The notes: a model not told the origin generated them from the letters alone. A stretch of 64,000 nucleotides of DNA from Ranitomeya imitator (GCF_032444005.1 NC_091288.1:187240001-187304000), one strand, 5' to 3'; shown: positions 14,801 to 43,764, numbered from the stretch's first letter. Program-made: numbers and translations.

Positions 14801-15938
14801 AATATTTTTGGTAAAAAGAGAACAGTTCTAGTCTGGTCTAGATAAGACGTTAAATCGGTGATGATTAGCTGCAGAACAGTTTCACATAGATTTAATATAA
14901 ATGTTATATGGCATAATATATGTTCTGATAATAGGTTTACACAGGACAATTGAGATCACATTAGTCATGATTTTTTTTTATATATCAGATGTCTCCAATT
15001 CTGAGAGGAAATATTGAAAAAAACAACCAAGTAAAAACAGAAAATAAAAAATAAAAAAAGGAAAGAAAAAAATAGATGGACTTAGGTCTTACCAAGTATA
15101 TTAAACGTGCATAATCATGTGTGCGGTCCTATTTATCTCTGTGAGTGGGAAAGGACCATCTATGTCCTAATCCTAAAGACAAAGAAACGGAATACCTAAT
15201 TGTACTAAACTGGTATATCAAGATAGGTGATATTCACAATCAGAAACATCGGGCAGGTGATTGCAATCAGCCCCCGATGTGGATCATCTACTAATGTGCA
15301 ACACGTGTCCCCCCCAATACTCTGCACTTATGGGGTACAGTGATATCACAGGTCAGGGAGGGGGCAGTCAGCGGAGGCCGTCGCCTGTGTTACCCTTCTG
15401 GGTTCTCAGCAGCTCCAGCTCGTCCCCACATCTTACAATCAGCTTCCTGTGCGATAAACATTGGAGTAAAGATCCCTGTGATGGTGACAAGAGCCGGGGA
15501 CAGGAGGAACGAGCTCCCGCAGCAGATTTATCTCCCCGGGTACACAGTGAGGTGCAGATCGGGAGGACGGCGGCGATGATCCCGGGATATTCTCTCCGCT
15601 CTTTCCCGGCATCTCTGCTAGTGACGGCTACAAATGGCCGGTGGAGATGTTGGAGAAGGGGAGGCGACGGAGGAAGCGCGCTCTGCTGTCTGGTGTTAGC
15701 CGGTAAAGGGCTTTTATCCCGGGCAGGGAAACACAAGGGGAGAGCGGAGCTTAACCCGGACTCAGCTGGGAGGAGGCGGGGCCTGTGTCCAGTGTCAGCC
15801 AATAGAAGCTCAGGACGGTGCAGCTCAGCAGCCAATCAGTGCGCAGTAAGCCTGTACATATAACAGGCGCCTCCAGCTCCGGCCTCAGTATTTTCCTTCC
15901 TGTCAAGAAGTATTTTCGTTTTGCTTCTGCAGCACATG

Positions 15939-16574
15939 ATGGCAGAGACCGCGCCAGCCGCCGCTCCACCTCCCGCAGAACCGGCCGCCAAATCCAAGAA
16001 GCAGCCGAAGAAATCCGCCGCCAAGAAGAGCAATAAACCCTCCGGCCCCAGCGTCTCCGAGCTGATCGTGAAAGCCGTGTCCGCCTCCAAGGAGCGCAGC
16101 GGGGTGTCTCTGGCCGCCCTGAAGAAGGCTCTGTCTGCCGGAGGATACGATGTAGAGAAGAACAACAGCCGCCTGAAGCTGGCCGTCAGGTCTCTGGTCA
16201 CCAAGGGCGCCCTCCTCCAGGTGAAGGGCAGCGGCGCCTCCGGGTCCTTCAAGCTGAACAAGAAGCAGGAGACGAAGGACAAAGTGGCCAAGAAGAAGCC
16301 AGCAGCTGCGGCCAAACCCAAGAAACCCGCTGCTGCCAAGAAAGCCGCCAAATCTCCGAAGAAGCCCAAAAAGGCTCCGACCGCGGCCAAGAAGAGCCCG
16401 AAAAAGGCCAAGAAGCCCGCAGCTGCCAAGAAAGCGGCCAAGAGCCCCAAGAAGCCGAAAGCCGCTCCCAAGCCCAAGAAGGTGACGAAGAGTCCGGCTA
16501 AGAAGGCGGCCAAACCCGCCAAGAGTCCGGCTAAGAAGGCTGCGAAAGCCAAGAAGCCCGCGGCTAAGAAATAA
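15939..16574 (+). CDS. H1: Linker histone H1
   Basis: Same protein as 5034-5669; stem-loop GGCTCTTATAAGAGCC at 16603-16618. Confidence 0.98.
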
Positions 16575-16618
16575 GCTGCAGCCCCTGTTCTGTTACCACA
16601 AAGGCTCTTATAAGAGCC

Positions 16619-19600
16619 ACCACCTCCTCCCCGCAGAGCTGTATGATCAGTGCCACCACCTCCTCCCCGCAAAGCTGTATGATCAGTGCCATCACCTCCT
16701 CCCCGCAGAGCTGTATGATCAGTGCCACCACCTCCTCCCCGCAGAGCTGTATGATCAGTGCCACCACCTCCTCCCCGCAGAGCTGTATGATCAGTGCCAC
16801 CACCTCCTCCCCGCAGAGCTGTATGATCAGTGCCACCACCTCCTCCCCGCAGAGCTGTATGATCAGTGCCACCACCTCCTCCCCGCAGAGCTGTATGATC
16901 AGAGCCATCACCTCCTCCCCGCAGAGCTGTATGATCAGAGCCATCACCTTTTCCCCGCAGAGCTGTATGATCAGAGCCACCTTCTCCACGCAGAGCTGTA
17001 TGATCAGTGCCACCACCTCCTCCTCGCAGAGCTGTATGATCAGAGCCACCACCTCCTCCCCGCAGAGCTGTATGATCAGAGCCATCACCTCCCCGCAGAG
17101 CTGTATGATCAGAGCCATCGCCTTCTCCCCGCAGAGCTGTATGATCAGTGCCACCACCTCCTCGCAGAGCTGTATGATCAGTGCCACCTTCTCCCCGCAG
17201 AGCTGTATGATCAGAGCCATCACCTTCTCCTCGCAGAGCTGTATGATCAGTGCCACCACCTCCTCGCCGAGCTGTATGATCAGTGCCACCTTCTCCCCGC
17301 AGAGCTGTATGATCAGAGCCATCACCTTCCCGCAGAGCTGTATGATCAGAGCCATCACCTTCCCGCAGAGCTGTATGATCAGTGCCACCACCTCCTCGCA
17401 GAGCTGTATGATCAGTGCCACCTTCTCCCCGCAGAGCTGTATGATCAGAGCCACCACCTCCTCCCCGCAGAGCTGTATGATCAGAGCCATCACCTCCTCC
17501 CCGCAGAGCTGTATGATCAGTGACACCACCTCCTCGCAGAGCTGTATGATCAGTGCCACCTTCTCCCCGCAGAGCTGTATGATCAGAGCCATCACCTTCT
17601 CCCCGCAGATCTGTATGATCAGAGCCACCTTCTCCCCGCAGAGCTGTATGATCAGAGCCACCTTCTCCCCGCAGAGCTGTATGATCAGAGCCACCACCTC
17701 CTCCACGCAGAGCTGTATGATCAGAGCCACCACCTCCTCCCCGCAGAGCTGTATGATCAGTGCCACCACCTCCTCGCAGAGCTGTATGATCAGAGCCACC
17801 TTCTCCCCGCAGAGCTGTATGATCAGAGCCATCACCTTCTCCCCGCAGAGCTGTATGATCAGAGCCACCTTCTCCCCGCAGAGCTGTATGATCAGTGCCA
17901 CCACCTCCTCGCAGAGCTGTATGATCAGTGCCACCTTCTCCCCGCAGAGCTGTATGATCAGAGCCATCACCTTCCCGCAGAGCTGTATGATCAGAGCCAT
18001 CACCTTCCCGCAGAGCTGTATGATCAGTGCCACCACCTCCTCGCAGAGCTGTATGATCAGTGCCACCTTCTCCCCGCAGAGCTGTATGATCAGAGCCACC
18101 ACCTCCTCCCCGCAGAGCTGTATGATCAGAGCCATCACCTCCTCCCCGCAGAGCTGTATGATCAGTGACACCACCTCCTCGCAGAGCTGTATGATCAGTG
18201 CCACCTTCTCCCCGCAGAGCTGTATGATCAGAGCCATCACCTTCTCCCCGCAGATCTGTATGATCAGAGCCACCTTCTCCCCGCAGAGCTGTATGATCAG
18301 AGCCACCTTCTCCCCGCAGAGCTGTATGATCAGAGCCACCACCTCCTCCACGCAGAGCTGTATGATCAGAGCCACCACCTCCTCCCCGCAGAGCTGTATG
18401 ATCAGTGCCACCACCTCCTCGCAGAGCTGTATGATCAGAGCCACCTTCTCCCCGCAGAGCTGTATGATCAGAGCCATCACCTTCTCCCCGCAGAGCTGTA
18501 TGATCAGAGCCACCTTCTCCCCGCAGAGCTGTATGATCAGTGCCACCACCTCCTCGCAGAGCTGTATGATCAGAGCCACCACCTCCTCCCCGCAGAGCTG
18601 TATGATCAGAGCCATCACCTCCCCGCAGAGCTGTATGATCAGAGCCATCACCTTCTCTCCGCAGAGCTGTATGATCAGAGCCACCTTCTCCCCGCAGAGC
18701 TGTATGACCAGAGCCATCACCTTCTCCCCGCAGAGCTGTATGATCAGTGCCACCACCTCCTCGCAGAGCTGTATGATCAGAGCCACCTTCTCCCCGCAGA
18801 GCTGTATGATCAGAGCCATCACCTTCTCCCCGCAGAGCTGTATGATCAGAGCCACCTTCTCCCCGCAGAGCTGTATGATCAGTGCCACCACCTCCTCGCA
18901 GAGCTGTATGATCAGAGCCACCACCTCCTCCCCGCAGAGCTGTATGATCAGAGCCATCACCTCCCCGCAGAGCTGTATGATCAGAGCCATCACCTTCTCT
19001 CCGCAGAGCTGTATGATCAGAGCCACCTTCTCCCCGCAGAGCTGTATGATCAGAGCCATCACCTTCTCCTCGCAGAGCTGTATGATCAGTGCCACCACCT
19101 CCTCGCAGAGCTGTATGATCATTGCCACCACCTCCTCCCCGCAGAGCTGTATGATCAGTGCCACCACCTCCTCTCCGCAGAGCTGTATGATCAGAGCCAT
19201 CACCTCCTCCCCGCAGAGCTGTATGATCAGAGCCATCACCTTTTCCCCGCAGAGCTGTATGATCAGAGCCACCTTCTCCACGCAGAGCTGTATGATCAGT
19301 GCCACCACCTCCTCCTCGCAGAGCTGTATGATCAGAGCCACCACCTCCTCCCCGCAGAGCTGTATGATCAGAGCCACCTTCTCCCCGCAGAGCTGTATGA
19401 TCAGAGCCACCACCTCCTCCACGCAGAGCTGTATGATCAGTGCCACCACCTCCTCCTCGCAGAGCTGTATGATCAGAGCCACCACCTCCTCCCCGCAGAG
19501 CTGTATGATCAGAGCCATCACCTCCCCGCAGAGCTGTATGATCAGAGCCATCGCCTTCTCCCCGCAGAGCTGTATGATCAGTGCCACCACCTCCTCGCAG

Positions 19601-22600
19601 AGCTGTATGATCAGTGCCACCTTCTCCCCGCAGAGCTGTATGATCAGAGCCATCACCTTCTCCTCGCAGAGCTGTATGATCAGTGCCACCACCTCCTCGC
19701 CGAGCTGTATGATCAGTGCCACCTTCTCCCCGCAGAGCTGTATGATCAGAGCCATCACCTTCCCGCAGAGCTGTATGATCAGAGCCATCACCTTCCCGCA
19801 GAGCTGTATGATCAGTGCCACCACCTCCTCGCAGAGCTGTATGATCAGTGCCACCTTCTCCCCGCAGAGCTGTATGATCAGAGCCACCACCTCCTCCCCG
19901 CAGAGCTGTATGATCAGAGCCATCACCTCCTCCCCGCAGAGCTGTATGATCAGTGACACCACCTCCTCGCAGAGCTGTATGATCAGTGCCACCTTCTCCC
20001 CGCAGAGCTGTATGATCAGAGCCATCACCTTCTCCCCGCAGATCTGTATGATCAGAGCCACCTTCTCCCCGCAGAGCTGTATGATCAGAGCCACCTTCTC
20101 CCCGCAGAGCTGTATGATCAGAGCCACCACCTCCTCCACGCAGAGCTGTATGATCAGAGCCACCACCTCCTCCCCGCAGAGCTGTATGATCAGTGCCACC
20201 ACCTCCTCGCAGAGCTGTATGATCAGAGCCACCTTCTCCCCGCAGAGCTGTATGATCAGAGCCATCACCTTCTCCCCGCAGAGCTGTATGATCAGAGCCA
20301 CCTTCTCCCCGCAGAGCTGTATGATCAGTGCCACCACCTCCTCGCAGAGCTGTATGATCAGAGCCACCACCTCCTCCCCGCAGAGCTGTATGATCAGAGC
20401 CATCACCTCCCCGCAGAGCTGTATGATCAGAGCCATCACCTTCTCTCCGCAGAGCTGTATGATCAGAGCCACCTTCTCCCCGCAGAGCTGTATGATCAGA
20501 GCCATCACCTTCTCCTCGCAGAGCTGTATGATCAGAGCCACCTTCTCCCCGCAGAGCTGTATGATCAGTGCCACCACCTCCTCGCAGAGCTGTATGATCA
20601 GAGCCACCTTCTCCCCGCAGAGCTGTATGATCAGAGCCACCTTCTCCCCGCAGAGCTGTATGATCAGAGCCACCTTCTCCCCGCAGAGCTGTATGATCAG
20701 AGCCATCACCTCCCCGCAGAGCTGTATGATCAGAGCCATCACCTTCTCCCCGCAGAGCTGTATGATCAGAGCCACCTTCTCCCCGCAGAGCTGTATGATC
20801 AGTGCCACCACCTCCTCGCCGAGCTGTATGATCAGTGCCACCTTCTCCCCGCAGAGCTGTATGATCAGAGCCATCACCTTCCCGCAGAGCTGTATGATCA
20901 GTGCCACCACCTCCTCGCAGAGCTGTATGATCAGTGCCACCTTCTCCCCGCAGAGCTGTATGATCAGAGCCACCACCTCCTCGCAGAGCTGTATGATCAG
21001 AGCCATCACCTTCTCCCCGCAGAGCTGTATGATCAGAGCCATCACCTTCTCCCCGCAGAGCTGTATGATCAGAGCCACCTTCTCCCCGCAGAGCTGTATG
21101 ATCAGTGCCACCACCTCCTCGCAGAGCTGTATGATCAGAGCCACCACCTCCTCCCCGCAGAGCTGTATGATCAGAGCCATCACCTCCCCGCAGAGCTGTA
21201 TGATCAGAGCCATCACCTTCTCTCCGCAGAGCTGTATGATCAGAGCCACCTTCTCCCCGCAGAGCTGTATGATCAGTGCCATCACCTCCTCCCCGCAGAG
21301 CTGTATGATCAGTGCCACCACCTCCTCCCCGCAGAGCTGTATGATCAGTGCCACCACCTCCTCCCCGCAGAGCTGTATGATCAGTGCCACCACCTCCTCC
21401 CCGCAGAGCTGTATGATCAGTGCCACCACCTCCTCCCCGCAGAGCTGTATGATCAGAGCCATCACCTCCTCCCCGCAGAGCTGTATGATCAGAGCCATCA
21501 CCTTCTCCCCGCAGAGCTGTATGATCAGAGCCACCTTCTCCACGCAGAGCTGTATGATCAGTGCCACCACCTCCTCCTCGCAGAGCTGTATGATCAGAGC
21601 CACCACCTCCTCCCCGCAGAGCTGTATGATCAGAGCCATCACCTCCCCGCAGAGCTGTATGATCAGTGCCACCACCTCCTCGCAGAGCTGTATGATCAGT
21701 GCCACCTTCTCCCCGCAGAGCTGTATGATCAGAGCCATCACCTTCTCCTCGCAGAGCTGTATGATCAGTGCCACCACCTCCTCGCCGAGCTGTATGATCA
21801 GTGCCACCTTCTCCCCGCAGAGCTGTATGATCAGAGCCATCACCTTCCCGCAGAGCTGTATGATCAGAGCCATCACCTTCCCGCAGAGCTGTATGATCAG
21901 TGCCACCACCTCCTCGCAGAGCTGTATGATCAGTGCCACCTTCTCCCCGCAGAGCTGTATGATCAGAGCCACCACCTCCTCCCCGCAGAGCTGTATGATC
22001 AGAGCCATCACCTCCTCCCCGCAGAGCTGTATGATCAGTGACACCACCTCCTCGCAGAGCTGTATGATCAGTGCCACCTTCTCCCCGCAGAGCTGTATGA
22101 TCAGAGCCATCACCTTCTCCCCGCAGATCTGTATGATCAGAGCCACCTTCTCCCCGCAGAGCTGTATGATCAGAGCCACCTTCTCCCCGCAGAGCTGTAT
22201 GATCAGAGCCACCACCTCCTCCACGCAGAGCTGTATGATCAGAGCCACCACCTCCTCCCCGCAGAGCTGTATGATCAGTGCCACCACCTCCTCGCAGAGA
22301 TGTATGATCAGAGCCACCTTCTCCCCGCAGAGCTGTATGATCAGAGCCATCACCTTCTCCCCGCAGAGCTGTATGATCAGAGCCACCTTCTCCCCGCAGA
22401 GCTGTATGATCAGTGCCACCACCTCCTCGCAGAGCTGTATGATCAGAGCCACCACCTCCTCCCCGCAGAGCTGTATGATCAGAGCCATCACCTCCCCGCA
22501 GAGCTGTATGATCAGAGCCATCACCTTCTCTCCGCAGAGCTGTATGATCAGAGCCACCTTCTCCCCGCAGAGCTGTATGATCAGAGCCATCACCTTCTCC

Positions 22601-25600
22601 TCGCAGAGCTGTATGATCAGAGCCACCTTCTCCCCGCAGAGCTGTATGATCAGTGCCACCACCTCCTCGCAGAGCTGTATGATCAGAGCCACCTTCTCCC
22701 CGCAGAGCTGTATGATCAGTGCCACCACCTCCTCGCCGAGCTGTATGATCAGTGCCACCTTCTCCCCGCAGAGCTGTATGATCAGAGCCATCACCTCCCC
22801 GCAGAGCTGTATGATCAGAGCCATCACCTCCCCGCAGAGCTGTATGATCAGAGCCATCACCTTCTCCCCGCAGAGCTGTATGATCAGAGCCACCTTCTCC
22901 CCGCAGAGCTGTATGATCAGTGCCACCACCTCCTCGCCGAGCTGTATGATCAGTGCCACCTTCTCCCCGCAGAGCTGTATGATCAGAGCCATCACCTTCC
23001 CGCAGAGCTGTATGATCAGTGCCACCACCTCCTCGCAGAGCTGTATGATCAGTGCCACCTTCTCCCCGCAGAGCTGTATGATCAGAGCCACCACCTCCTC
23101 GCAGAGCTGTATGATCAGAGCCATCACCTTCTCCCCGCAGAGCTGTATGATCAGAGCCATCACCTTCTCCCCGCAGAGCTGTATGATCAGAGCCACCTTC
23201 TCCCCGCAGAGCTGTATGATCAGTGCCACCACCTCCTCGCAGAGCTGTATGATCAGAGCCACCACCTCCTCCCCGCAGAGCTGTATGATCAGAGCCATCA
23301 CCTCCCCGCAGAGCTGTATGATCAGAGCCATCACCTTCTCTCCGCAGAGCTGTATGATCAGAGCCACCTTCTCCCCGCAGAGCTGTATGATCAGTGCCAC
23401 CACCTCCTCGCAGAGCTGTATGATCAGTGCCACTTTCTCCCCGCAGAGCTGTATGATCAGAGCCATCACCTTCTCCTCGCAGAGCTGTATGATCAGAGCC
23501 ACCTTCTCCCCGCAGAGCTGTATGATCAGTGCCACCACCTCCTCGCAGAGCTGTATGATCAGAGCCACCTTCTCCCTGCAGAGCTGTATGATCAGAGCCA
23601 TCACCTCCCCGCAGAGCTGTATGATCAGAGCCATCACCTTCTCCCCACAGAGCTGTATGATCAGAGCCACCTTCTCCCCGCAGAGCTGTATGATCAGTGC
23701 CACCACCTCCTCGCAGAGCTGTATGATCAGAGCCACCTTCTCCCCGCAGAGCTGTATGATCAGAGCCATCACCTTCCCGCAGAGCTGTATGATCAGTGTC
23801 ACCACCTCCTCGCAGAGCTGTATGATCAGTGTCACCACCTCCTCGTCGCAGAGCTGTATGATCAGAGCCACCTTCTCCCCGCAGAGCTGTATGATCAGAG
23901 CCATCACTTCCTCCCCGCAGAGCTGTATGATCAGAGCCATCACCTCCCCGCAGAGCTGTATGATCAGAGCCATCACCTTCTCCTCGCAGAGCTGTATGAT
24001 CAGTGCCACCACCTCCTCGCCGAGCTGTATGATCAGTGCCACCTTCTCCCCGCAGAGCTGTATGATCAGAGCCATCACCTTCCCGCAGAGCTGTATGATC
24101 AGAGCCATCACCTTCCCGCAGAGCTGTATGATCAGTGCCACCACCTCCTCGCAGAGCTGTATGATCAGTGCCACCTTCTCCCCGCAGAGCTGTATGATCA
24201 GAGCCACCACCTCCTCCCCGCAGAGCTGTATGATCAGAGCCATCACCTCCTCCCCGCAGAGCTGTATGATCAGTGACACCACCTCCTCGCAGAGCTGTAT
24301 GATCAGTGCCACCTTCTCCCCGCAGAGCTGTATGATCAGAGCCATCACCTTCTCCCCGCAGATCTGTATGATCAGAGCCACCTTCTCCCCGCAGAGCTGT
24401 ATGATCAGAGCCACCTTCTCCCCGCAGAGCTGTATGATCAGAGCCACCACCTCCTCCACGCAGAGCTGTATGATCAGAGCCACCACCTCCTCCCCGCAGA
24501 GCTGTATGATCAGTGCCACCACCTCCTCGCAGAGCTGTATGATCAGAGCCACCTTCTCCCCGCAGAGCTGTATGATCAGAGCCATCACCTTCTCCCCGCA
24601 GAGCTGTATGATCAGAGCCACCTTCTCCCCGCAGAGCTGTATGATCAGTGCCACCACCTCCTCGCAGAGCTGTATGATCAGAGCCACCACCTCCTCCCCG
24701 CAGAGCTGTATGATCAGAGCCATCACCTCCCCGCAGAGCTGTATGATCAGAGCCATCACCTTCTCTCCGCAGAGCTGTATGATCAGAGCCACCTTCTCCC
24801 CGCAGAGCTGTATGATCAGAGCCATCACCTTCTCCTCGCAGAGCTGTATGATCAGAGCCACCTTCTCCCCGCAGAGCTGTATGATCAGTGCCACCACCTC
24901 CTCGCAGAGCTGTATGATCAGAGCCACCTTCTCCCCGCAGAGCTGTATGATCAGAGCCACCTTCTCCCCGCAGAGCTGTATGATCAGAGCCATCACCTCC
25001 CCGCAGAGCTGTATGATCAGAGCCATCACCTTCTCCCCGCAGAGCTGTATGATCAGAGCCACCTTCTCCCCGCAGAGCTGTATGATCAGTGCCACCACCT
25101 CCTCGCCGAGCTGTATGATCAGTGCCACCTTCTCCCCGCAGAGCTGTATGATCAGAGCCATCACCTTCCCGCAGAACTGTATGATCAGTGCCACCACCTC
25201 CTCGCAGAGCTGTATGATCAGTGCCACCTTCTCCCCGCAGAGCTGTATGATCAGAGCCACCACCTCCTCGCAGAGCTGTATGATCAGAGCCATCACCTTC
25301 TCCCCGCAGAGCTGTATGATCAGAGCCATCACCTTCTCCCCGCAGAGCTGTATGATCAGAGCCACCTTCTCCCCGCAGAGCTGTATGATCAGTGCCACCA
25401 CATCCTCGCAGAGCTGTATGATCAGAGCCACCACCTCCTCCCCGCAGAGCTGTATGATCAGAGCCATCACCTCCCCGCAGAGCTGTATGATCAGAGCCAT
25501 CACCTTCTCTCCGCAGAGCTGTATGATCAGAGCCACCTTCTCCCCGCAGAGCTGTATGATCAGTGCCATCACCTCCTTCCCGCAGAGCTGTATGATCAGT

Positions 25601-28600: not shown

Positions 28601-31600
28601 ACCACCTCCTCGCAGAGCTGTATGATCAGTGCCACTTTCTCCCCGCAGAGCTGTATGATCAGAGCCATCACCTTCTCCTCGCAGAGCTGTATGATCAGTG
28701 CCACCACCTCCTCGCAGAGCTGTATGATCAGAGCCACCTTCTCCCCGCAGAGCTGTATGATCAGAGCCATCACCTCCCCGCAGAGCTGTATGATCAGAGC
28801 CATCACCTTCTCCCCACAGAGCTGTATGTTCAGAGCCACCTTCTCCCCGCAGAGCTGTATGATCAGAGCCATCACCTTCTCTCCGCAGAGCTGTATGATC
28901 AGAGCCACCTTCTCCCCGCAGAGCTGTATGATCAGTGCCACAACCTCCTCGCAGAGCTGTATGATCAGTGCCACTTTCTTCCCGCAGAGCTGTATGATCA
29001 GAGCCATCACCTTCTCCTCGCAGAGCTGTATGATCAGAGCCACCTTCTCCCCGCAGAGCTGTATGATCAGTGCCACCACCTCCTCGCAGAGCTGTATGAT
29101 CAGAGCCACCTTCTCCCCGCAGAGCTGTATGATCAGTGCCACCACCTCCTCGCAGAGCTGTATGATCAGAGCCACCACCTCCTCCCCGCAGAGCTGTATG
29201 ATCAGTGCCACCACCTCCTCGCAGAGCTGTATGATCAGTGCCACTTTCTCCCCGCAGAGCTGTATGATCAGAGCCATCACCTTCTCCTCGCAGAGCTGTA
29301 TGATCAGTGCCACCACCTCCTCGCAGAGCTGTATGATCAGAGCCACCTTCTCCCCGCAGAGCTGTATGATCAGAGCCATCACCTCCCCGCAGAGCTGTAT
29401 GATCAGAGCCATCACCTTCTCCCCACAGAGCTGTATGTTCAGAGCCACCTTCTCCCCGCAGAGCTGTATGATCAGTGCCACCACCTCCTCGCAGAGCTGT
29501 ATGATCAGAGCCACCTTCTCCCCGCAGAGCTGTATGATCAGAGCCATCACCTTCCCGCAGAGCTGTATGATCAGTGTCACCACCTCCTCGCAGAGCTGTA
29601 TGATCAGTGTCACCACCTCCTCGTCGCAGAGCTGTATGATCAGAGCCACCTTCTCCCCGCAGAGCTGTATGATCAGAGCCATCACTTCCTCCCCGCAGAG
29701 CTGTATGATCAGAGCCATCACCTCCCCGCAGAGCTGTATGATCAGAGGTATCACCTTCTCCCCGAAGAGCTGTATGATCAGAGACATCACCTCCCCGCAG
29801 AGCTGTATGATCAGAGCCATCACCTTCTCTCCGCAGAGCTGTATGATCAGAGCCACCTTCTCCCCGCAGAGCTGTATGATCAGTGCCACAACCTCCTCGC
29901 AGAGCTGTATGATCAGTGCCACTTTCTTCCCGCAGAGCTGTATGATCAGAGCCATCACCTTCTCCTCGCAGAGCTGTATGATCAGAGCCACCTTCTCCCC
30001 GCAGAGCTGTATGATCAGTGCCACCACCTCCTCGCAGAGCTGTATGATCAGAGCCACCTTCTCCCCGCAGAGCTGTATGATCAGTGCCACCACCTCCTCG
30101 CAGAGCTGTATGATCAGAGCCACCACCTCCTCCCCGCAGAGCTGTATGATCAGTGCCACCACCTCCTCGCAGAGCTGTATGATCAGTGCCACTTTCTCCC
30201 CGCAGAGCTGTATGATCAGAGCCATCACCTTCTCCTCGCAGAGCTGTATGATCAGTGCCACCACCTCCTCGCAGAGCTGTATGATCAGAGCCACCTTCTC
30301 CCCGCAGAGCTGTATGATCAGAGCCATCACCTCCCCGCAGAGCTGTATGATCAGAGCCATCACCTTCTCCCCACAGAGCTGTATGTTCAGAGCCACCTTC
30401 TCCCCGCAGAGCTGTATGATCAGTGCCACCACCTCCTCGCAGAGCTGTATGATCAGAGCCACCACCTCCTCCCCGCAGAGCTGTATGATCAGAGCCATCA
30501 CCTCCCCGCAGAGCTGTATGATCAGAGCCATCACCTTCTCCCCGCAGAGCTGTATGATCAGAGCCACCTTCTCCCCGCAGAGCTGTATGATCAGTGCCAC
30601 CACCTCCTCGCCGAGCTGTATGATCAGTGCCACCTTCTCCCCGCAGAGCTGTATGATCAGAGCCATCACCTTCCCGCAGAGCTGTATGATCAGTGCCACC
30701 ACCTCCTCGCAGAGCTGTATGATCAGTGCCACCTTCTCCCCGCAGAGCTGTATGATCAGAGCCACCACCTCCTCGCAGAGCTGTATGATCAGAGCCATCA
30801 CCTTCTCCCCGCAGAGCTGTATGATCAGAGCCATCACCTTCTCCCCGCAGAGCTGTATGATCAGAGCCACCTTCTCCCCGCAGAGCTGTATGATCAGTGC
30901 CACCACCTCCTCGCAGAGCTGTATGATCAGAGCCACCACCTCCTCCCCGCAGAGCTGTATGATCAGAGCCACCACCTCCTCCCCGCAGAGCTGTATGATC
31001 AGAGCCACCTTCTCCCCGCAGAGCTGTATGATCAGTGCCACCACCTCCTCGCAGAGCTGTATGATCAGAGCCACCACCTCCTCCCCGCAGAGCTGTATGA
31101 TCAGTGCCATCACCTCCTCCCCGCAGAGCTGTATGATCAGTGCCACCACCTCCTCCCCGCAGAGCTGTATGATCAGTGCCACCACCTCCTCCCCGCAGAG
31201 CTGTATGATCAGTGCCACCACCTCCTCCCCGCAGAGCTGTATGATCAGTGCCACCACCTCCTCCCCGCAGAGCTGTATGATCAGAGCCATCACCTCCTCC
31301 CCGCAGAGCTGTATGATCAGAGCCATCACCTTCTCCCCGCAGAGCTGTATGATCAGAGCCACCTTCTCCACGCAGAGCTGTATGATCAGTGCCACCACCT
31401 CCTCCTCGCAGAGCTGTATGATCAGAGCCACCACCTCCTCCCCGCAGAGCTGTATGATCAGAGCCATCACCTCCCCGCAGAGCTGTATGATCAGTGCCAC
31501 CACCTCCTCGCAGAGCTGTATGATCAGTGCCACCTTCTCCCCGCAGAGCTGTATGATCAGAGCCATCACCTTCTCCTCGCAGAGCTGTATGATCAGTGCC

Positions 31601-34600
31601 ACCACCTCCTCGCCGAGCTGTATGATCAGTGCCACCTTCTCCCCGCAGAGCTGTATGATCAGAGCCATCACCTTCCCGCAGAGCTGTATGATCAGAGCCA
31701 TCACCTTCCCGCAGAGCTGTATGATCAGTGCCACCACCTCCTCGCAGAGCTGTATGATCAGTGCCACCTTCTCCCCGCAGAGCTGTATGATCAGAGCCAC
31801 CACCTCCTCCCCGCAGAGCTGTATGATCAGTGACACCACCTCCTCGCAGAGCTGTATGATCAGTGCCACCTTCTCCCCGCAGAGCTGTATGATCAGAGCC
31901 ATCACCTTCTCCCCGCAGATCTGTATGATCAGAGCCACCTTCTCCCCGCAGAGCTGTATGATCAGAGCCACCTTCTCCCCGCAGAGCTGTATGATCAGAG
32001 CCACCACCTCCTCCACGCAGAGCTGTATGATCAGAGCCACCACCTCCTCCCCGCAGAGCTGTATGATCAGAGCCATCACCTCCCCGCAGAGCTGTATGAT
32101 CAGAGCCATCACCTTCTCTCCGCAGAGCTGTATGATCAGAGCCACCTTCTCCCCGCAGAGCTGTATGATCAGAGCCATCACCTTCTCCTCGCAGAGCTGT
32201 ATGATCAGAGCCACCTTCTCCCCGCAGAGCTGTATGATCAGTGCCACCACCTCCTCGCAGAGCTGTATGATCAGAGCCACCTTCTCCCCGCAGAGCTGTA
32301 TGATCAGAGCCACCTTCTCCCCGCAGAGCTGTATGATCAGTGCCACCACCTCCTCGCCGAGCTGTATGATCAGTGCCACCTTCTCCCCGCAGAGCTGTAT
32401 GATCAGAGCCATCACCTCCCCGCAGAGCTGTATGATCAGAGCCATCACCTCCCCGCAGAGCTGTATGATCAGAGCCATCACCTTCTCCCCGCAGAGCTGT
32501 ATGATCAGAGCCACCTTCTCCCCGCAGAGCTGTATGATCAGTGCCACCACCTCCTCGCCGAGCTGTATGATCAGTGCCACCTTCTCCCCGCAGAGCTGTA
32601 TGATCAGAGCCATCACCTTCCCGCAGAGCTGTATGATCAGTGCCACCACCTCCTCGCAGAGCTGTATGATCAGTGCCACCTTCTCCCCGCAGAGCTGTAT
32701 GATCAGAGCCACCACCTCCTCGCAGAGCTGTATGATCAGAGCCATCACCTTCTCCCCGCAGAGCTGTATGATCAGAGCCATCACCTTCTCCCCGCAGAGC
32801 TGTATGATCAGAGCCACCTTCTCCCCGCAGAGCTGTATGATCAGTGCCACCACCTCCTCGCAGAGCTGTATGATCAGAGCCACCACCTCCTCCCCGCAGA
32901 GCTGTATGATCAGAGCCATCACCTCCCCGCAGAGCTGTATGATCAGAGCCATCACCTTCTCTCCGCAGAGCTGTATGATCAGAGCCACCTTCTCCCCGCA
33001 GAGCTGTATGATCAGTGCCACCACCTCCTCGCAGAGCTGTATGATCAGTGCCACTTTCTCCCCGCAGAGCTGTATGATCAGAGCCATCACCTTCTCCTCG
33101 CAGAGCTGTATGATCAGAGCCACCTTCTCCCCGCAGAGCTGTATGATCAGTGCCACCACCTCCTCGCAGAGCTGTATGATCAGAGCCACCTTCTCCCTGC
33201 AGAGCTGTATGATCAGAGCCATCACCTCCCCGCAGAGCTGTATGATCAGAGCCATCACCTTCTCCCCACAGAGCTGTATCATCAGAGCCACCTTCTCCCC
33301 GCAGAGCTGTATGATCAGTGCCACCACCTCCTCGCAGAGCTGTATGATCAGAGCCACCTTCTCCCCGCAGAGCTGTATGATCAGAGCCATCACCTTCCCG
33401 CAGAGCTGTATGATCAGTGTCACCACCTCCTCGCAGAGCTGTATGATCAGTGTCACCACCTCCTCGTCGCAGAGCTGTATGATCAGAGCCACCTTCTCCC
33501 CGCAGAGCTGTATGATCAGAGCCATCACTTCCTCCCCGCAGAGCTGTATGATCAGAGCCATCACCTCCCCGCAGAGCTGTATGATCAGAGGTATCACCTT
33601 CTCCCCGAAGAGCTGTATGATCAGAGCCATCACCTCCCCGCAGAGCTGTATGATCAGAGCCATCACCTTCTCTCCGCAGAGCTGTATGATCAGAGCCACC
33701 TTCTCCCCGCAGAGCTGTATGATCAGTGCCACAACCTCCTCGCAGAGCTGTATGATCAGTGCCACTTTCTTCCCGCAGAGCTGTATGATCAGAGCCATCA
33801 CCTTCTCCTCGCAGAGCTGTATGATCAGAGCCACCTTCTCCCCGCAGAGCTGTATGATCAGTGCCACCACCTCCTCGCAGAGCTGTATGATCAGAGCCAC
33901 CTTCTCCCCGCAGAGCTGTATGATCAGTGCCACCACCTCCTCGCAGAGCTGTATGATCAGAGCCACCACCTCCTCCCCGCAGAGCTGTATGATCAGTGCC
34001 ACCACCTCCTCGCAGAGCTGTATGATCAGTGCCACTTTCTCCCCGCAGAGCTGTATGATCAGAGCCATCACCTTCTCCTCGCAGAGCTGTATGATCAGTG
34101 CCACCACCTCCTCGCAGAGCTGTATGATCAGAGCCACCTTCTCCCCGCAGAGCTGTATGATCAGAGCCATCACCTCCCCGCAGAGCTGTATGATCAGAGC
34201 CATCACCTTCTCCCCACAGAGCTGTATGTTCAGAGCCACCTTCTCCCCGCAGAGCTGTATGATCAGTGCCACCACCTCCTCGCAGAGCTGTATGATCAGA
34301 GCCACCTTCTCCCCGCAGAGCTGTATGATCAGAGCCATCACCTTCCCGCAGAGCTGTATGATCAGTGTCACCACCTCCTCGCAGAGCTGTATGATCAGTG
34401 TCACCACCTCCTCGTCGCAGAGCTGTATGATCAGAGCCACCTTCTCCCCGCAGAGCTGTATGATCAGAGCCATCACTTCCTCACCGCAGAGCTGTATGAT
34501 CAGAGCCATCACCTCCCCGCAGAGCTGTATGATCAGAGGTATCACCTTCTCCCCGAAGAGCTGCATGATCAGTGCCACCACCTCCTCGCAGAGCTGTATG

Positions 34601-37600
34601 ATCAGAGCCACCTTCTCCCCGCAGAGCTGTATGATCAGAGCCATCACCTTCTCCCCGCAGAGCTGTATGATCAGAGCCACCTTCTCCCCGCAGAGCTGTA
34701 TGATCAGTGCCACCACCTCCTCGCAGAGCTGTATGATCAGAGCCACCACCTCCTCCCCGCAGAGCTGTATGATCAGAGCCATCACCTCCCCGCAGAGCTG
34801 TATGATCAGAGCCATCACCTTCTCTCCGCAGAGCTGTATGATCAGAGCCACCTTCTCCCCGCAGAGCTGTATGATCAGAGCCATCACCTTCTCCTCGCAG
34901 AGCTGTATGATCAGAGCCACCTTCTCCCCGCAGAGCTGTATGATCAGTGCCACCACCTCCTCGCAGAGCTGTATGATCAGAGCCACCTTCTCCCCGCAGA
35001 GCTGTATGATCAGAGCCATCACCTTCCCGCAGAGCTGTATGATCAGTGTCACCACCTCCTCGCAGAGCTGTATGATCAGTGTCACCACCTCCTCGTCGCA
35101 GAGCTGTATGATCAGAGCCACCTTCTCCCCGCAGAGCTGTATGATCAGAGCCATCACTTCCTCCCCGCAGAGCTGTATGATCAGAGCCATCACCTCCCCG
35201 CAGAGCTGTATGATCAGAGGTATCACCTTCTCCCCGAAGAGCTGTATGATCAGAGCCATCACCTCCCCGCAGAGCTGTATGATCAGAGCCATCACCTTCT
35301 CTCCGCAGAGCTGTATGATCAGAGCCACCTTCTCCCCGCAGAGCTGTATGATCAGTGCCACAACCTCCTCGCAGAGCTGTATGATCAGTGCCACTTTCTT
35401 CCCGCAGAGCTGTATGATCAGAGCCATCACCTTCTCCTCGCAGAGCTGTATGATCAGAGCCACCTTCTCCCCGCAGAGCTGTATGATCAGTGCCACCACC
35501 TCCTCGCAGAGCTGTATGATCAGAGCCACCTTCTCCCCGCAGAGCTGTATGATCAGTGCCACCACCTCCTCGCAGAGCTGTATGATCAGAGCCACCACCT
35601 CCTCCCCGCAGAGCTGTATGATCAGTGCCACCACCTCCTCGCAGAGCTGTATGATCAGTGCCACTTTCTCCCCGCAGAGCTGTATGATCAGAGCCATCAC
35701 CTTCTCCTCGCAGAGCTGTATGATCAGTGCCACCACCTCCTCGCAGAGCTGTATGATCAGAGCCACCTTCTCCCCGCAGAGCTGTATGATCAGAGCCATC
35801 ACCTCCCCGCAGAGCTGTATGATCAGAGCCATCACCTTCTCCCCACAGAGCTGTATGTTCAGAGCCACCTTCTCCCCGCAGAGCTGTATGATCAGTGCCA
35901 CCACCTCCTCGCAGAGCTGTATGATCAGAGCCACCTTCTCCCCGCAGAGCTGTATGATCAGAGCCACCTTCTCCCCGCAGAGCTGTATGATCAGAGCCAC
36001 CTTCTCCCCGCAGAGCTGTATGATCAGTGCCACCACCTCCTCGCAGAGCTGTATGATCAGAGCCACCACCTCCTCCCCGCAGAGCTGTATGATCAGAGCC
36101 ATCACCTCCCCGCAGAGCTGTATGATCAGAGCCATCACCTTCTCTCCGCAGAGCTGTATGATCAGAGCCACCTTCTCCCCGCAGAGCTGTATGATCAGTG
36201 CCACCACCTCCTCGCAGAGCTGTATGATCAGTGCCACTTTCTCCCCGCAGAGCTGTATGATCAGAGCCATCACCTTCTCCTCGCAGAGCTGTATGATCAG
36301 AGCCACCTTCTCCCCGCAGAGCTGTGTGATCAGTGCCACCACCTCCTCGCAGAGCTGTATGATCAGAGCCACCTTCTCCCCGCAGAGCTGTATGATCAGA
36401 GCCACCTTCTCCCCGCAGAGCTGTATGATCAGTGCCACCACCTCCTCGCCGAGCTGTATGATCAGTGCCACCTTCTCCCCGCAGAGCTGTATGATCAGAG
36501 CCATCACCTCCCCGCAGAGCTGTATGATCAGAGCCATCACCTCCCCGCAGAGCTGTAGGATCAGAGCCATCACCTTCTCCCCGCAGAGCTGTATGATCAG
36601 TGCCACCACCTCCTCGCAGAGCTGTATGATCAGTGCCACCTTCTCCCCGCAGAGCTGTATGATCAGAGCCATCACCTTCCCGCAGAGCTGTATGATCAGT
36701 GCCACCACCTCCTCGCAGAGCTGTATGATCAGTGCCACCTTCTCCCCGCAGAGCTGTATGATCAGAGCCATCACCTTCCCGCAGAGCTGTATGATCAGTG
36801 CCACCACCTCCTCGCAGAGCTGTATGATCAGTGCCACCTTCTCCCCGCAGAGCTGTATGATCAGAGCCATCACCTTCCCGCAGAGCTGTATGATCAGAGC
36901 CACCACCTCCTCGCAGAGCTGTATGATCAGAGCCACCTTCTCCCCGCAGAGCTGTATGATCAGAGCCATCACCTTCTCCCCGCAGAGCTGTATGATCAGA
37001 GCCACCTTCTCCCCGCAGAGCTGTATGATCAGTGCCACCACCTCCTCGCAGAGCTGTATGATCAGAGCCACCACCTCCTCCCCGCAGAGCTGTATGATCA
37101 GAGCCATCACCTCCCCGCAGAGCTGTATGATCAGAGCCATCACCTTCTCTCCGCAGAGCTGTATGATCAGAGCCACCTTCTCCCCGCAGAGCTGTATGAT
37201 CAGTGCCACCACCTCCTCGCAGAGCTGTATGATCAGTGCCACTTTCTCCCCGCAGAGCTGTATGATCAGAGCCATCACCTTCTCCTCGTAGAGCTGTATG
37301 ATCAGAGCCACCTTCTCCCCGCAGAGCTGTATGATCAGTGTCACCACCTCCTCGCAGAGCTGTATGATCAGAGCCACCTTCTCCCCGCAGAGCTGTATGA
37401 TCAGAGCCATCACCTCCCCGCAGAGCTGTATGATCAGAGCCATCACCTTCTCCCCACATAGCTGTATGATCAGAGCCACCTTCTCCCCGCAGAGCTGTAT
37501 GATCAGTGCCACCACCTCCTCGCAGAGCTGTATGATCAGAGCCACCTTCTCCCCGCAGAGCTGTATGATCAGAGCCACCTTCTCCCCGCAGAGCTGTATG

Positions 37601-38940
37601 ATCAGAGCCATCACCTCCCCGCAGAGCTGTATGATCAGTGCCACCACCTCCTCGCAGAGCTGTATGATCAGTGCCACCTTCTCCCCGCAGAGCTGTATGA
37701 TCAGAGCCACCACCTCCTCGCAGAGCTGTATGATCAGAGCCACCTTCTCCCCGCAGAGCTGTATGATCAGTGCCATCACCTCCTCGCAGAGCTGTATGAT
37801 CAGAGCCACCTTCTCCCCGCAGAGCTGTATGATCAGAGCCATCACCTCCTCCCCGCAGAGCTGTATGATCAGAGCCATCACCTCCTCCCCGCAGAGCTGT
37901 ATGATCAGTGACACCACCTCCTCGCAGAGCTGTATGATCAGTGCCACCTTCTCCCCGCAGAGCTGTATGATCAGAGCCATCACCTTCTCCCCGCAGAGCT
38001 GTATGATCAGAGCCACCTTCTCCACGCAGAGCTGTATGATCAGAGCCACCTTCTCCCCGCAGAGCTGTATGATCAGAGCCACCACCTCCTCCACGCAGAG
38101 CTGTATGATCAGAGCCACCACCTCCTCCCCGCAGAGCTGTATGATCAGTGCCACCACCTCCTCCCCGCAGAGCTGTATGATCAGAGCCACCACCTCCTCC
38201 CCGCAGAGCTGTATGATCAGTGCCACCACCTCCTCGCAGAGCTGTATGATCAGAGCCACCTTCTCCCCGCAGAGCTGTATGATCAGAGCCACCACCTTCT
38301 CCTCGCAGAGCTGTATGATCAGAGCCACCTTCTCCCCGCAGAGCTGTATGATCAGTGCCACCACCTCCTCGCAGAGCTGTATGATCAGAGCCACCACCTC
38401 CTCCCCGCAGAGCTGTATGATCAGAGCCATCACCTCCCCGCAGAGCTGTATGATCAGAGCCATCACCTTCTCTCCGCAGAGCTGTATGATCAGTGCCACC
38501 ACCTCCTCGCAGAGCTGTATGATCAGTGCCACTTTCTCCCCGCAGAGCTGTATGATCAGAGCCATCACCTTCTCCTCGCAGAGCTGTATGATCAGAGCCA
38601 CCTTCTCCCCGCAGAGCTGTATGATCAGTGCCACCACCTCCTCGTAGAGCTGTATGATCAGAGCCACCTTCTCCCCGCAGAGCTGTATGATCAGAGCCAT
38701 CACCTTCCCGCAGAGCTGTATGATCAGTGCCACCACCTCCTCGCAGAGCTGTATGATCAGTGTCACCACCTCCTCGTCGCAGAGCTGTATGGTCAGAGCC
38801 ACCACCTCCTCCCCGCAGAGCTGTATCATCAGAGCCATCACTTCCTCCCCGCAGAGCTGTATGATCAGAGCCATCACTTCTTCCCCGCAGAGCTGTATGA
38901 TCAGAGCCATCACTTCCTCCTCGCAGAGCTGTATGATCAG
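16619..38940 (+). repeat. H1-3'-end satellite array 2, 22.3 kb, roughly 650 units of 33/36 bp
   Basis: Uninterrupted tandem units with a near-invariant GCAGAGCTGTATGATCAG and a variable C-rich spacer; ends ...gtatgatcag|ttctcggact. Copy number estimated from length. Confidence 0.99.
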
Positions 38941-39317
38941 TTCTCGGACTTGTAATGATTTTAATATAACAGACGCTGGTCGCAGTTTCAGGATGGGGGG
39001 TGGGGTGATCTGATGATAATGCGGGAGCTGCAGTGTACAGCGCTATATACGGGGACATTTCAGCACAGATACACCAGCTGCTCCAGCAGCGGCAAATAAT
39101 CAATAAGCGCCTCAGAAAAGTGGGGTCGAGATAACACTGGTATAGCCCCCCTATTAATATTACCCAGATGTCTCGGGTTATAAGGACAACTCCAATAAAC
39201 ATACAAAACCAAAGAAAGGAGTGAACCAGTCCCACAAAACATAATACAAATCAATAATGCTTTATTATTACAGAAAATTATATCCACAAAAATACATAAA
39301 ACACATAAATCCAGTAA

Positions 39318-40004
<687 letters not shown>

Positions 40005-40994: not shown

Positions 40995-41505
<511 letters not shown>

Positions 41506-42016
41506 TTGTGTTCTGTCCTCACAACCCAAAGGCTCTTATCAGAGCCGCCCACATCTCAGTGAGAGGCTGCACCTGACTGCTCGGACCTGACTTCTGCGCT
41601 CCCTTGGTGCTATCGCTGTAATGCTGGTACAATGCTCATCAGTGCCGACTTCTCCGCATACTACGGGGTCGGAAATCTTACATTGTGGCGGATGGTAATT
41701 CTGACACTGCTCCGCGGTCCCGGTACCGTCCTCTGATGCTGTGTGGGCGGATGGTTCTGTTGCTCTTATCAGAGCCGCCACATTGATAAGAACAAGCTGT
41801 GATCTCCGCTGTGTGATGCGGCATCTGCTGTAATATGCGCCACCGGCGGCTAAACCGGAAGATCATCGGATGGAATATCCACAGCTATATACATTTATAT
41901 TTCAGCACTGGGCACTTACTGCACTATACCGCTGTATCACAGTGTGCAGCACTATATGGGGGTACAAAGAACTGTTCGGAAAGATGCATTACTGTATAGA
42001 GGTGATTATTCGTATT

Positions 42017-43077: not shown

Positions 43078-43764
<687 letters not shown>

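Follow-up and report, generated by a model that had tools for sequence, protein, structure and literature searches.

Why should a histone H1 gene be followed by some 22 kb of short tandem repeats that resemble its own 3'-processing signal? The question is raised by a histone cluster of Ranitomeya imitator, which we analysed in a window of 64,000 nucleotides (GCF_032444005.1 NC_091288.1:187240001-187304000; all positions are counted from its first letter). The original prediction for this locus proposed a U7 device: read-through RNA would represent a polymer of U7 sites, which could be cut into phased 33/36-nt pieces, serve as a fail-safe terminator, titrate U7 or contribute to the nucleation of histone locus bodies. 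Our results point to a different answer: with a probability of about 70%, the H1 array is a locus-specific satellite of mutational origin, upheld and enlarged by unequal crossing-over and without demonstrable selection for U7 binding.

Structure of the array downstream of histone H1

The parent gene, its 3' signal and the main array are located as follows:

15936-16574, plus strand: coding sequence of the middle-copy histone H1, which seeds the main array with its 3' end (open reading frame; Pfam Linker_histone PF00538, E=2e-22)
16603-16618, plus strand: H1 3' stem-loop GGCTCTTATAAGAGCC (GGCTCT-TATA-AGAGCC), the sole complete stem-loop of the array region
16613-38940, plus strand: main H1 array, 656 units, ~22 kb (own parse and Tandem Repeats Finder)
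16635-16643, plus strand: native H1 HDE core AGAGCTGTA, with the stem 16 nt and ACCAC 11 nt upstream
38941-39012, plus strand: unique flank of ~70 nt directly 3' of the last main-array unit

The array is a genuine repeat, far above chance expectation. Our own parse resolved 656 uninterrupted units that are all either 33 bp (430) or 36 bp (225) long, and Tandem Repeats Finder recovered the tract from 16620 to 38940 with a period of 33, 655.9 copies and 86% matches; the predicted 22-kb array of about 650 units 3' of H1 is thereby confirmed, for this one assembly, up to position 38940. Each unit reads AG(A/T)GCC, followed by an 11/14-nt pyrimidine-rich spacer and GC-AGAGCTGTA-TGATC, and represents the cassette of the adjoining H1 gene from the 3' stem arm to the HDE. 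The 5' stem arm is left out, as had been foreseen: GGCTCT does not occur within the array. The stem-loop architecture (16 nt, 6-bp stem, 4-nt loop) is complete only at the native site, and this hairpin is the only stable one when the H1 end and the array are folded. The proposal that the array starts at the last base of the stem-loop was right about the stem-loop but slightly too late, since the repeat homology is already present in the loop and 3' arm (ATAAGAGCC in the stem-loop vs ATCAGAGCC in the unit), which places the array start within the stem-loop.

The 3' arm AGAGCC is unaltered in 416 units (63%) and reads AGTGCC in nearly all others. The cleavage-region motif across 655 units is ACCAC in 225, ATCAC in 214 and ACCTT in 193 of them. 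The anatomy that had been described for the unit is therefore accurate with respect to AG(A/T)GCC, spacer and HDE, but its ACCAC holds for 225 of 655 units only. Likewise, the 11-nt spacing from the ACCAC-type motif to AGAG is found in the 36-bp units, whereas it amounts to 8 nt in the 33-bp majority. The spacer exhibits a strong purine/pyrimidine strand asymmetry with a C-rich sense strand and GGGGAGGAGGTGGTGG-type runs on the opposite one.

The array is also crossed by open frames with lengths of 6882 and 7449 aa, and its long ORFs on both strands together with unit lengths that are all multiples of three might suggest that it encodes a giant repetitive protein. This coding interpretation was rejected on frame statistics and Pfam noise, and we regard it as practically negligible. 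Within the unit, a stop codon closes just one frame per strand, which leaves four frames open in every array of this type, and the 3-nt steps in unit length are explained by CCA/CCT triplet slippage. The Pfam matches represent low-complexity noise with no stretch passing by itself, and array variants with 1-2-nt indels occur in the independent DNA run X7.

Sequence variation and block duplication

Of the 656 units, 606 contain the 18-mer GCAGAGCTGTATGATCAG without any change, and 0.48% of its positions deviate from the consensus, whereas the 15/18-nt spacer occurs in 36 variants, ten of which are present in at least 20 copies each. This is the contrast between a nearly invariant 18-mer and a variable spacer that the original prediction had pointed out, and it is what selection for U7 binding would lead one to expect. 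However, the conservation of the HDE does not exceed that of the adjoining non-HDE half of the 18-mer: its nine positions show eight variant types in 30 non-consensus copies, the nine adjacent positions nine types in 27 copies. The comparison of HDE with other positions, which had been proposed in advance as a test of function, thus speaks largely against it. The density of rare variants per site is ~0.94 in the 18-mer and ~1.2-1.5 in the spacer.

Recent block duplication accounts for the uniformity of the array. Exact duplicates of at least 600 bp, with lags of 1.6-9.6 kb, make up 71% of the main array; consequently, the 656 units do not count as independent and should be uniform even in the absence of selection. 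No simple higher-order repeat emerged from the main array, where the unit-level autocorrelation does not exceed 0.18 and block duplication is irregular and of multi-kb scale instead. The most divergent units are those of the distal edge. Old high-frequency variation is confined to the ten major types of the spacer and absent from the 18-mer, a distribution less even than uniform neutral mutation would produce. Constraint on the HDE-containing box could be the source of this contrast between spacer and 18-mer, which concerns the H1 array as well as the H2B array described below.

Array copies, remnants and an array-less H1 variant

As predicted, all three H1 genes of the window carry the array at their 3' side (5711-6438, 16620-38940 and 62628 to the window end). 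Further traces of it are found at the H3-H4 repeats, and its absence is documented by an H1 variant:

5698-6438, plus strand: H1 copy 1, stem-loop and 21-unit array with the terminus ...GTATGATAAT
62611-64000, plus strand: H1 copy 3, stem-loop and array of at least 40 units that runs into the window end
42633-42700, plus strand: two residual units from the distal end of the array, located on the 5' border of an H3-H4 repeat
46393-46496, plus strand: three residual units from the distal end of the array, on the 5' border of the H3-H4 repeat that comes next
39010-39194, plus strand: flank that is fused straight to the first H1 HDE in the array-less variant (run X2), with a 3-nt CTG overlap at the joint

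The three paralogous H1 copies share the same stem-loop/array junction, and the copy-1 array matches the beginning of the main array exactly over its first 264 nt. The unit numbers then diverge to 21, 656 and at least 40. About 0.6 kb beyond the copy-1 array lies a LINE-like fragment (7078-8986, minus strand). The array-less variant is a contig of 919 nt in the RNA-like run X2 that ranges from the 5' UTR to 185 nt beyond the HDE; its sequence GCTGATGATAAT lacks one base compared with the unit-type GCTGTATGATAAT that ends the copy-1 array. The expression of an H1 variant devoid of the array, as seen in this RNA-like run, argues against a selected U7 polymer.

The array lies where the H1 block meets the H3-H4 repeats, and units from its distal end have been copied together with the latter. 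This position is compatible with a role at the level of DNA, i.e. as a spacer or boundary, as a barrier to replication forks or transcription, or as a recombination hotspot, with the polypyrimidine/polypurine tract and the 18-mer as a protein-binding box. The strand asymmetry of the spacer fits such a role, and so does the combination of a conserved box and a variable domain in each unit, which is also known from the frog satellite PcP190. We nevertheless consider it improbable, and more so than a role in U7 binding: no binding factor or motif for the array was identified, and the array length differs at least 30-fold among neighbouring H1 genes, which argues against a dosage-sensitive role.

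U7 complementarity and predicted processing competence

The complementarity of the HDE to the U7 5' region is borne out for mammalian U7. UACAGCUCU occurs in the published human and mouse U7 snRNA sequences, and AGAGCTGTA forms nine perfect bp with the human/mouse U7 5' region, which was taken from PMC7026596 and may differ from the U7 of this species (-14.0 kcal/mol; shuffles -6.9 +/- 2.2, z ~ -3.3). Duplex energies against mammalian U7 rank it first among the U7 complements of the entire histone cluster, and it is intact in 625 of 655 units. The motif AGAGCTG is common to the HDEs of H1 and H2B and fits a conserved CAGCUCU core. An Rfam scan of the window found no U7 gene; only the three H3 stem-loops exceeded the gathering threshold.

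Folding predictions for multi-unit array RNA are no better than those for shuffles (z +0.95), hence sense array RNA would be unstructured and accessible. Together with the 9-bp duplex and a cleavage-type motif 11 or 8 nt away from the HDE, this prediction favours a polymer of U7 sites, and read-through transcripts of H1 may present repeated accessible 9-nt sites that bind U7 weakly. If array RNA were cleaved by U7, its ends should be phased by 33/36 nt and located ~8-11 nt upstream of AGAGCUGUA. The published biochemistry speaks against efficient cleavage: without SLBP, a duplex of ~15-16 bp is required, and cleavage of a substrate with nine uninterrupted bp that had lost the purine core stayed below 5% although a stem-loop was present (PMC7026596). 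The array units cannot bind SLBP because their 5' stem arm is missing, and two thirds of them are devoid of ACCAC. By analogy with these assays, the units are expected to be poor substrates, since stem-loop and SLBP are missing and the duplex comprises only nine bp.

DNA depth and RNA-like contigs

The array is abundant in independent DNA. Array words reach ~10^3 times the depth of the H1 gene in DNA run X7, where the summed depth of array bins is 45,000-419,000 compared with ~200 for the H1 gene and 217-535 for the H1 promoter bins. The H1-plus-array stretch is present in 20 runs from ten studies, and array words were found in runs labelled as several different organisms, which indicates that the satellite is not ephemeral. 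These data bear on the suspicion that the repeat has been over-expanded or misjoined during assembly. The long exact blocks, which comprise 71% of the array, could be inflated by assemblers, and run X7 lacks a contig over 38964-39050 and exhibits an alternative joint from 38920 to 39473. An artefact is nonetheless very improbable in view of the array depth in independent DNA contigs, of the number of runs and studies that contain the H1-plus-array stretch, of contigs that bridge the stem-loop into unit 1, and of a junction that agrees among the three paralogous copies.

The literature provides a plausible setting for transcription of the array, and the statements of the original prediction on this background are correct. 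Histone-promoter read-through into satellite DNA has been reported from oocytes of Notophthalmus and Xenopus, and read-through histone transcription is documented for amphibian oocytes and embryos (PMC11602149); furthermore, U7-containing bodies are located at amphibian histone loci (PMC12046345). Three RNA-like contigs pass from the H1 gene or its stem-loop across the cleavage site into units 1-2 (X12, 16367-16645 and 16616-81; X2, 15905-16641), which is in line with the proposed U7 function. The read-through that is visible in these runs, which represent contigs of guessed library type from material other than oocyte nuclei and whose depth does not equal expression level, reaches the first one or two units only. 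The flank at 38941-39012 beyond the array has zero depth in the three RNA-like runs, and these runs show no sign of array-length transcripts. In the RNA-like data of organism A, the array depth does not exceed the gene depth, although the DNA contains ~10^3 times more array. We do not accept array words in the RNA-like runs as evidence of transcription: the H1 promoter bins have a depth of 0 there, a DNA admixture far below the detection limit of the promoter would suffice for the observed depths, and trace genomic DNA could thus explain the words that were seen.

A sister array downstream of H2B

A second array was found 3' of an H2B gene of the same cluster:

51117-52111, plus strand: H2B stem-loop (51117-51132) and, on its 3' side, an array of 40 24-bp units

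Its internal units consist of CTATAAGAGCC-ACCCAC, and the final unit closes with the true HDE CTATAAGAGCTG (AAGAGCTG at 52104). The true HDE is restricted to this last unit, while the internal ones have AAGAGCC in its place. CTATAAGAGCC is invariant, and the spacer contains four polymorphic sites. The period of the array equals the distance between the TAAGAGC of the stem-loop and the TAAGAGC of the HDE. Judged from its sequence, the H2B array is of independent and plainly recombinational origin, apparently born by an exchange between stem-loop arm and HDE, which share TAAGAGC. The presence of this second array suggests that the histone 3'-processing cassette is intrinsically prone to duplication, or at least it appears so. 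The loss of the HDE from the internal H2B units argues against selection for U7 sites as a common cause of both arrays.

The functional part of the original prediction accordingly finds no support in the variation of the HDE, the RNA-like runs, the published biochemistry or the H2B sister array. We regard it as unlikely that the H1 array, and perhaps that of H2B, is a selected and retained cis-element. Its nascent RNA in oocytes and early embryos, stages for which histone read-through is documented, would expose hundreds of accessible U7-complementary sites in cis and thereby titrate U7 snRNP or concentrate it at the cluster, seed or enlarge the histone locus body, and/or enforce fail-safe cleavage and termination 3' of H1.

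Proposed origin of the H1 array

The features described above are the hallmarks of a satellite, namely a long head-to-tail array, a high copy number, block duplication, variation between copies and degenerate edges. Whereas anatomy, copy number, block duplications and the differences between paralogues can be read directly from the window, we infer the mechanism of the duplication and its neutrality. The founding event would have been the tandem duplication of a 36-bp segment that ranges from the H1 loop and 3' arm through cleavage region and spacer to just past the HDE. A tentative route is microhomology between two ATAA motifs, one in the loop and the other 36 bp downstream in ATGATAAT, the ancestral flank behind the HDE; GCTGATGATAAT of the array-less variant is one base short of GCTGTATGATAAT. 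The 33-bp units probably arose by triplet slippage within the CCA/CCT-rich spacer, and repeated multi-kb unequal exchanges would have driven the growth to ~10^3 units per H1 gene. An exchange between stem-loop arm and HDE, as proposed for H2B, was considered for H1 and rejected: it would result in a period of 22 bp (AGAGC at 16613 and 16635), and each H1 unit holds both motifs.

If a satellite of mutational origin is the correct explanation, the H1 array represents a clean natural case of a short cis-signal that has seeded a satellite, and the H2B array shows the homology between arm and HDE at work. The H1 array also provides a ready-made test for the role of multimerised HDEs in U7 snRNP recruitment and in building the histone locus body of vertebrates. 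Should it be inert, it calls for caution in annotation and U7-target prediction and may serve as a marker of histone 3'-end instability.

Comparison with known systems

Satellites that flank amphibian histone genes are already known from newts, and frog satellites derived from multigene families are known from PcP190. The H1-linked array seems to be new to the literature. In agreement with the original prediction, which knew of no HDE-derived satellite, the searchable literature did not yield a satellite that is built of the U7/HDE half-signal and still attached to its parent gene, and the unit sequence is absent from the literature searched. Histone gene organisation was surveyed across more than 250 species in a 2026 study, which mentions neither a satellite nor an HDE array, and the text of a paper on tandem repeats of Rana temporaria contains nothing relevant to it.

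The satellite that flanks the histone genes of the newt has a unit of ~220 bp, and we know of no report that it is a derivative of a histone 3' signal. The histone clusters of Notophthalmus viridescens are embedded in satellite DNA and give rise to giant read-through units on lampbrush loops (Diaz & Gall 1985, as cited in PMC11602149). Both systems share long tandem arrays directly 3' of amphibian histone genes, with read-through as the obvious route of transcription, and a histone locus that serves as attachment site of U7-containing bodies. Unlike in the newt, the 33/36-bp unit of the H1 array consists of the stem-loop's 3' half and the HDE of the adjoining gene, and it is known here as DNA.

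PcP190 is a satellite of hyloid frogs that is derived from 5S rDNA (PMC11675491, PMC4201667). It resembles the H1 array as a frog satellite that traces back to a functional element within a tandem multigene family and combines a conserved with a hypervariable region. However, its ~190-bp units stem from an RNA gene and are dispersed over many chromosomal sites and families, whereas the H1 array represents an mRNA-processing signal that is, as far as seen, attached to its parent gene; the two show no sequence relationship.

The units share with the canonical histone 3' signal (stem-loop, ACCCA and HDE, served by SLBP and U7 snRNP/CPSF73) the 3' arm, an ACCAC/ATCAC that resembles the cleavage region, the spacer length and the U7-complementary core. 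They differ from it in the absence of the 5' arm and SLBP site, in pairing with U7 over nine bp, and in the ACCAC that two thirds of them do not contain.

The spacer of Xenopus rDNA contains 60/81-bp enhancer repeats and spacer promoters that are derived from the gene promoter and have a demonstrated enhancer function. As in the H1 array, a cis-signal of a tandem multigene family has been multiplied in the neighbouring spacer, but the rDNA repeats are of promoter origin with enhancer activity, whereas the repeated H1 element is an RNA signal for 3'-end formation with a candidate function only.

Repeat-rich RNAs are known as sponges or as seeds of condensates. The circular RNA CDR1as acts as a sponge with many sites for miR-7, and the LL2R repeat, from lampbrush chromosomes of the chicken, is an example of the architectural RNAs composed of tandem repeats (bioRxiv 10.64898/2026.03.19.712899). 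If it is transcribed, the RNA of the H1 array would resemble both as a polymer of binding sites for a single small RNP, an analogy by design only.

Organization of the histone cluster and its satellite arrays

The window represents a replication-dependent histone cluster of vertebrate, amphibian-type organization, and a 16-nt stem-loop follows every gene of the cluster.

Features of the window
651, 11558, 41194, 44954 and 48750: H4 genes
5031-5669, 15936-16574 and 61944-62582: three copies of the H1 coding sequence (Pfam check)
39-50 kb: three H3-H4 repeats of 3.76 kb each (Pfam check for H3)
50257 (start): H2B, partly masked by a 275-N run inside its coding region (50358-50632)
54699-55091: H2A (Pfam check)
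16603-16618: H1 stem-loop GGCTCT-TATA-AGAGCC
16620-38940: main H1 array, period 33, 655.9 copies, 86% matches (Tandem Repeats Finder)
5711-6438 and 62628 to the window end: the same repeat (Tandem Repeats Finder), the length of the latter being a lower bound because it runs into the window end
51125-52109 (51117-52111 with stem-loop): H2B array, 40 units of 24 bp, 3' of the H2B stem-loop
7078-8986 and 56162-58187, minus strand: LINE-like fragments with APE-type endonuclease (PF03372) and reverse transcriptase (PF00078)
9818-9882 and 58861-58921: (AT)n microsatellites, one after each LINE-like fragment

The 21-unit array of H1 copy 1 ends about 0.6 kb before the first LINE-like fragment. All H3-H4 repeats carry a second, degenerate stem-loop TGCTCTTATCAGAGCC about 230 nt 3' of the H4 stem-loop (41761-41810, 45521-45570, 49317-49366), followed by an HDE-like AACAAGCTGTGA (-13.3 kcal/mol with mammalian U7); the H4 genes at 651 and 11558 lack it. 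Such a stem-loop may have remained from a histone gene since lost, or may act as a back-up site for processing.

The main array was parsed without interruption into 656 units, 430 of 33 bp and 225 of 36 bp; no other length occurs, because the spacer is a slippage-prone CCA/CCT triplet tract. Downstream of the H1 stem-loop follow ACCAC, a pyrimidine-rich spacer, GC, the histone downstream element (HDE) AGAGCTGTA (16635-16643), TGATC and the AG(A/T)GCC of the next unit. By this order of elements, the unit is the 3' portion of the processing cassette, from the 3' stem arm through cleavage region and spacer to the HDE. The anatomy of the original prediction thus holds with four corrections. Repeat homology already sets in within the loop and arm, so that the array start is not strictly the terminal base of the stem-loop. 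The 3' arm AGAGCC is unaltered in 416 of 655 units (the HDE in 625 of 655), ACCAC is kept in only 225 and replaced by ATCAC in 214 and ACCTT in 193, and the 11-nt distance from ACCAC to AGAG applies to the 36-bp units, the commoner 33-bp units having 8 nt. Gene predictors may call open reading frames of 7449 aa (minus strand, 16564-38913) and 6882 aa (plus strand, 16643-37291) across the array. They are trivial, as unit lengths are multiples of 3 and a stop codon occurs in one frame per strand only, and a coding array deserves next to no credence.

The long array is also found in independent DNA data. The H1-plus-array stretch is present in 20 public runs from 10 studies with several coded organism labels, and array words alone occur in runs with further labels. 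In the DNA run X7, contig depth is about 200 for the H1 gene and 217-535 for its promoter, and the summed depth of the array bins reaches 45,000-419,000. This implies roughly 10^3 units for each H1 gene, and long arrays are therefore real and typical; an assembly artefact is accordingly highly improbable. Together with the 656-unit parse and the repeat finder, the X7 depth confirms the H1-cassette satellite as such. No X7 contig covers 38964-39050, and one links a distal unit (38920) directly to the H3 upstream region (39473), omitting 552 bp; either the distal structure is polymorphic or contigs were filtered out.

Sequence variation and growth of the H1 array

The conserved 18-mer GCAGAGCTGTATGATCAG consists of GC, the HDE and TGATCAG. 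An unaltered copy is present in 606 of 656 units, only 0.48% of all 18-mer positions being non-consensus, and the spacer of 15 or 18 nt occurs in 36 variants, ten of them with at least 20 copies. The HDE does not stand out from the rest of the 18-mer: its nine positions show 8 variant types in 30 non-consensus copies, the other nine 9 types in 27 copies. The HDE-specific constraint of the original prediction is thus largely contradicted, the HDE varying no less than its non-repetitive neighbors. Counting each rare variant once, there are about 0.94 types per site in the 18-mer and about 1.2-1.5 in the spacer, which puts recent mutational input at a similar level in both. Every old, high-frequency difference between units falls in the spacer.

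Exact repeats of at least 600 bp cover 71% of the array at lags of 1.6-9.6 kb. Multi-kb duplications of very recent date thus account for most of the 22 kb and are the hallmark of unequal crossing-over; the concentration of the most divergent units at the distal edge is a further sign of such exchange. The 656 units are strongly interdependent. No selection is required for their uniformity, and selection on one unit among hundreds would be negligible. A role of the array at the DNA level appears very unlikely. The three paralogous arrays have their proximal sequence in common, and those of H1 copies 1 and 2 are identical over 264 nt before unit numbers differ. Each H3-H4 repeat (39000-50200) opens with two to three distal H1-array units followed by the same flank, and the array edge is therefore older than the triplication.

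The first duplication may tentatively be ascribed to microhomology between the ATAA of the loop and that of the post-HDE flank. ATGATAAT follows the HDE where array 1 ends distally and also in an array-less variant, and its ATAA lies 36 bp from the loop ATAA; we remain tentative since the contig of that variant is shorter by one base in this flank. The origin differs from that of the H2B array because the H1 unit contains both motifs, arm and HDE.

Internal units of the H2B array read CTATAAGAGCC-ACCCAC..., and the final one ends with CTATAAGAGCTGCGG, the true HDE; AAGAGCTG is kept in this last unit only. CTATAAGAGCC is invariant, and two of the four polymorphic spacer sites are CpG transitions. 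The period equals the distance between two copies of TAAGAGC, one spanning loop and 3' arm and the other within the HDE; the H2B array was born through arm-HDE exchange at TAAGAGC. Arm and HDE are presumably alike because the anti-HDE of U7 resembles the 5' arm. The internal units no longer have the G of AAGAGCTG, so that selection for U7 sites does not account for both the H1 and the H2B array; a cassette prone to duplication is the better shared explanation.

U7 pairing and transcription

Human and mouse U7 snRNA start with (C/A)AGUGUUACAGCUCUUUUAG (PMC7026596). Duplex energies refer to this 5' region and may differ for the U7 of this species, whose gene was not found within the 64-kb window.

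Duplex energies with the human/mouse U7 5' region (kcal/mol)
H1 site and all unit types: -14.0 (perfect 9-bp duplex)
H4 HDE: -12.4
H2A HDE: -11.8
H2B HDE: -11.7
H3 HDE: -7.4
Shuffled units (control): -6.9 +/- 2.2

The original prediction was right in its structural half, a unit whose HDE is complementary to mammalian U7. AGAGCTG, common to the true HDEs of H1 and H2B (the latter at 52104), would fit a conserved CAGCUCU core in the U7 of this species. RNA of several units shows no more structure than shuffled sequences (z +0.95 sense, +1.39 antisense), so the folding model predicts that the sites would be accessible.

Cleavage free of SLBP, the stem-loop partner in processing, and of the stem-loop has been observed with U7 duplexes of 15-16 bp in mouse extracts and with semi-recombinant U7 snRNP, and a purine-core replacement that left 9 bp of the 15-bp uninterrupted duplex brought cleavage below 5% even with a stem-loop (PMC7026596). 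The array units, with 9-bp complementarity and no stem-loop, would be weak substrates at best; transient U7 binding is conceivable.

The runs X2, X12 and X19 are RNA-like Logan contigs whose library type is guessed, zero H1-promoter depth being in line with RNA. Contigs link the H1 coding sequence with the first HDE across the stem-loop and the cleavage site (X12 16367-16645, X2 15905-16641), and one of low depth (2.2) reaches the second unit (X12 16616-16681). If the libraries are RNA, some H1 transcripts are therefore unprocessed or read through, a behavior already known from frog histone genes (PMC11602149, citing Masi & Johnson 2003). Array depth in X12 does not exceed gene depth, versus about 1000 times more array than gene in DNA, and the unique 70-nt flank after the array has zero depth in all three runs. 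Array words are about 10-fold in excess in X19; DNA admixture below promoter detection would be enough to account for every array word, this excess included.

A 919-nt contig of X2 joins the first H1 HDE (16641) to 39010-39194, a flank that in the window is separated from the array by 70 nt, and represents, on the same guess of library type, an expressed H1 variant without array. It extends at least 185 nt past the HDE and is thus read-through RNA. The CTG overlap at the joint is only 3 nt, and a k-mer artefact was rejected.

A single 22-kb read-through transcript would bear about 650 U7-complementary sites, and U7 is a low-abundance snRNP (PMC5054213); frequent read-through would thus matter or be harmful, which cuts both ways. 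A selected U7-related role is unlikely, and the proposed U7 device is unsupported by HDE constraint, flank depth or the 9-bp pairing of units without stem-loop. A satellite of mutational origin, enlarged by unequal crossing-over with the HDE copies riding as passengers, is the best explanation (probability about 0.7).

Comparison with known systems

The unit sequence did not occur in the literature searched, and satellites and HDE arrays go unmentioned in a 2026 survey that covers histone gene organization in more than 250 species. We rate the array as a gene-element-derived, locus-bound satellite. The closest precedents are the newt histone clusters, which are embedded in satellite DNA with giant read-through units (PMC11602149), the U7-containing bodies at amphibian histone loci (PMC12046345), and PcP190, a frog satellite derived from 5S rDNA that combines a conserved with a hypervariable region.
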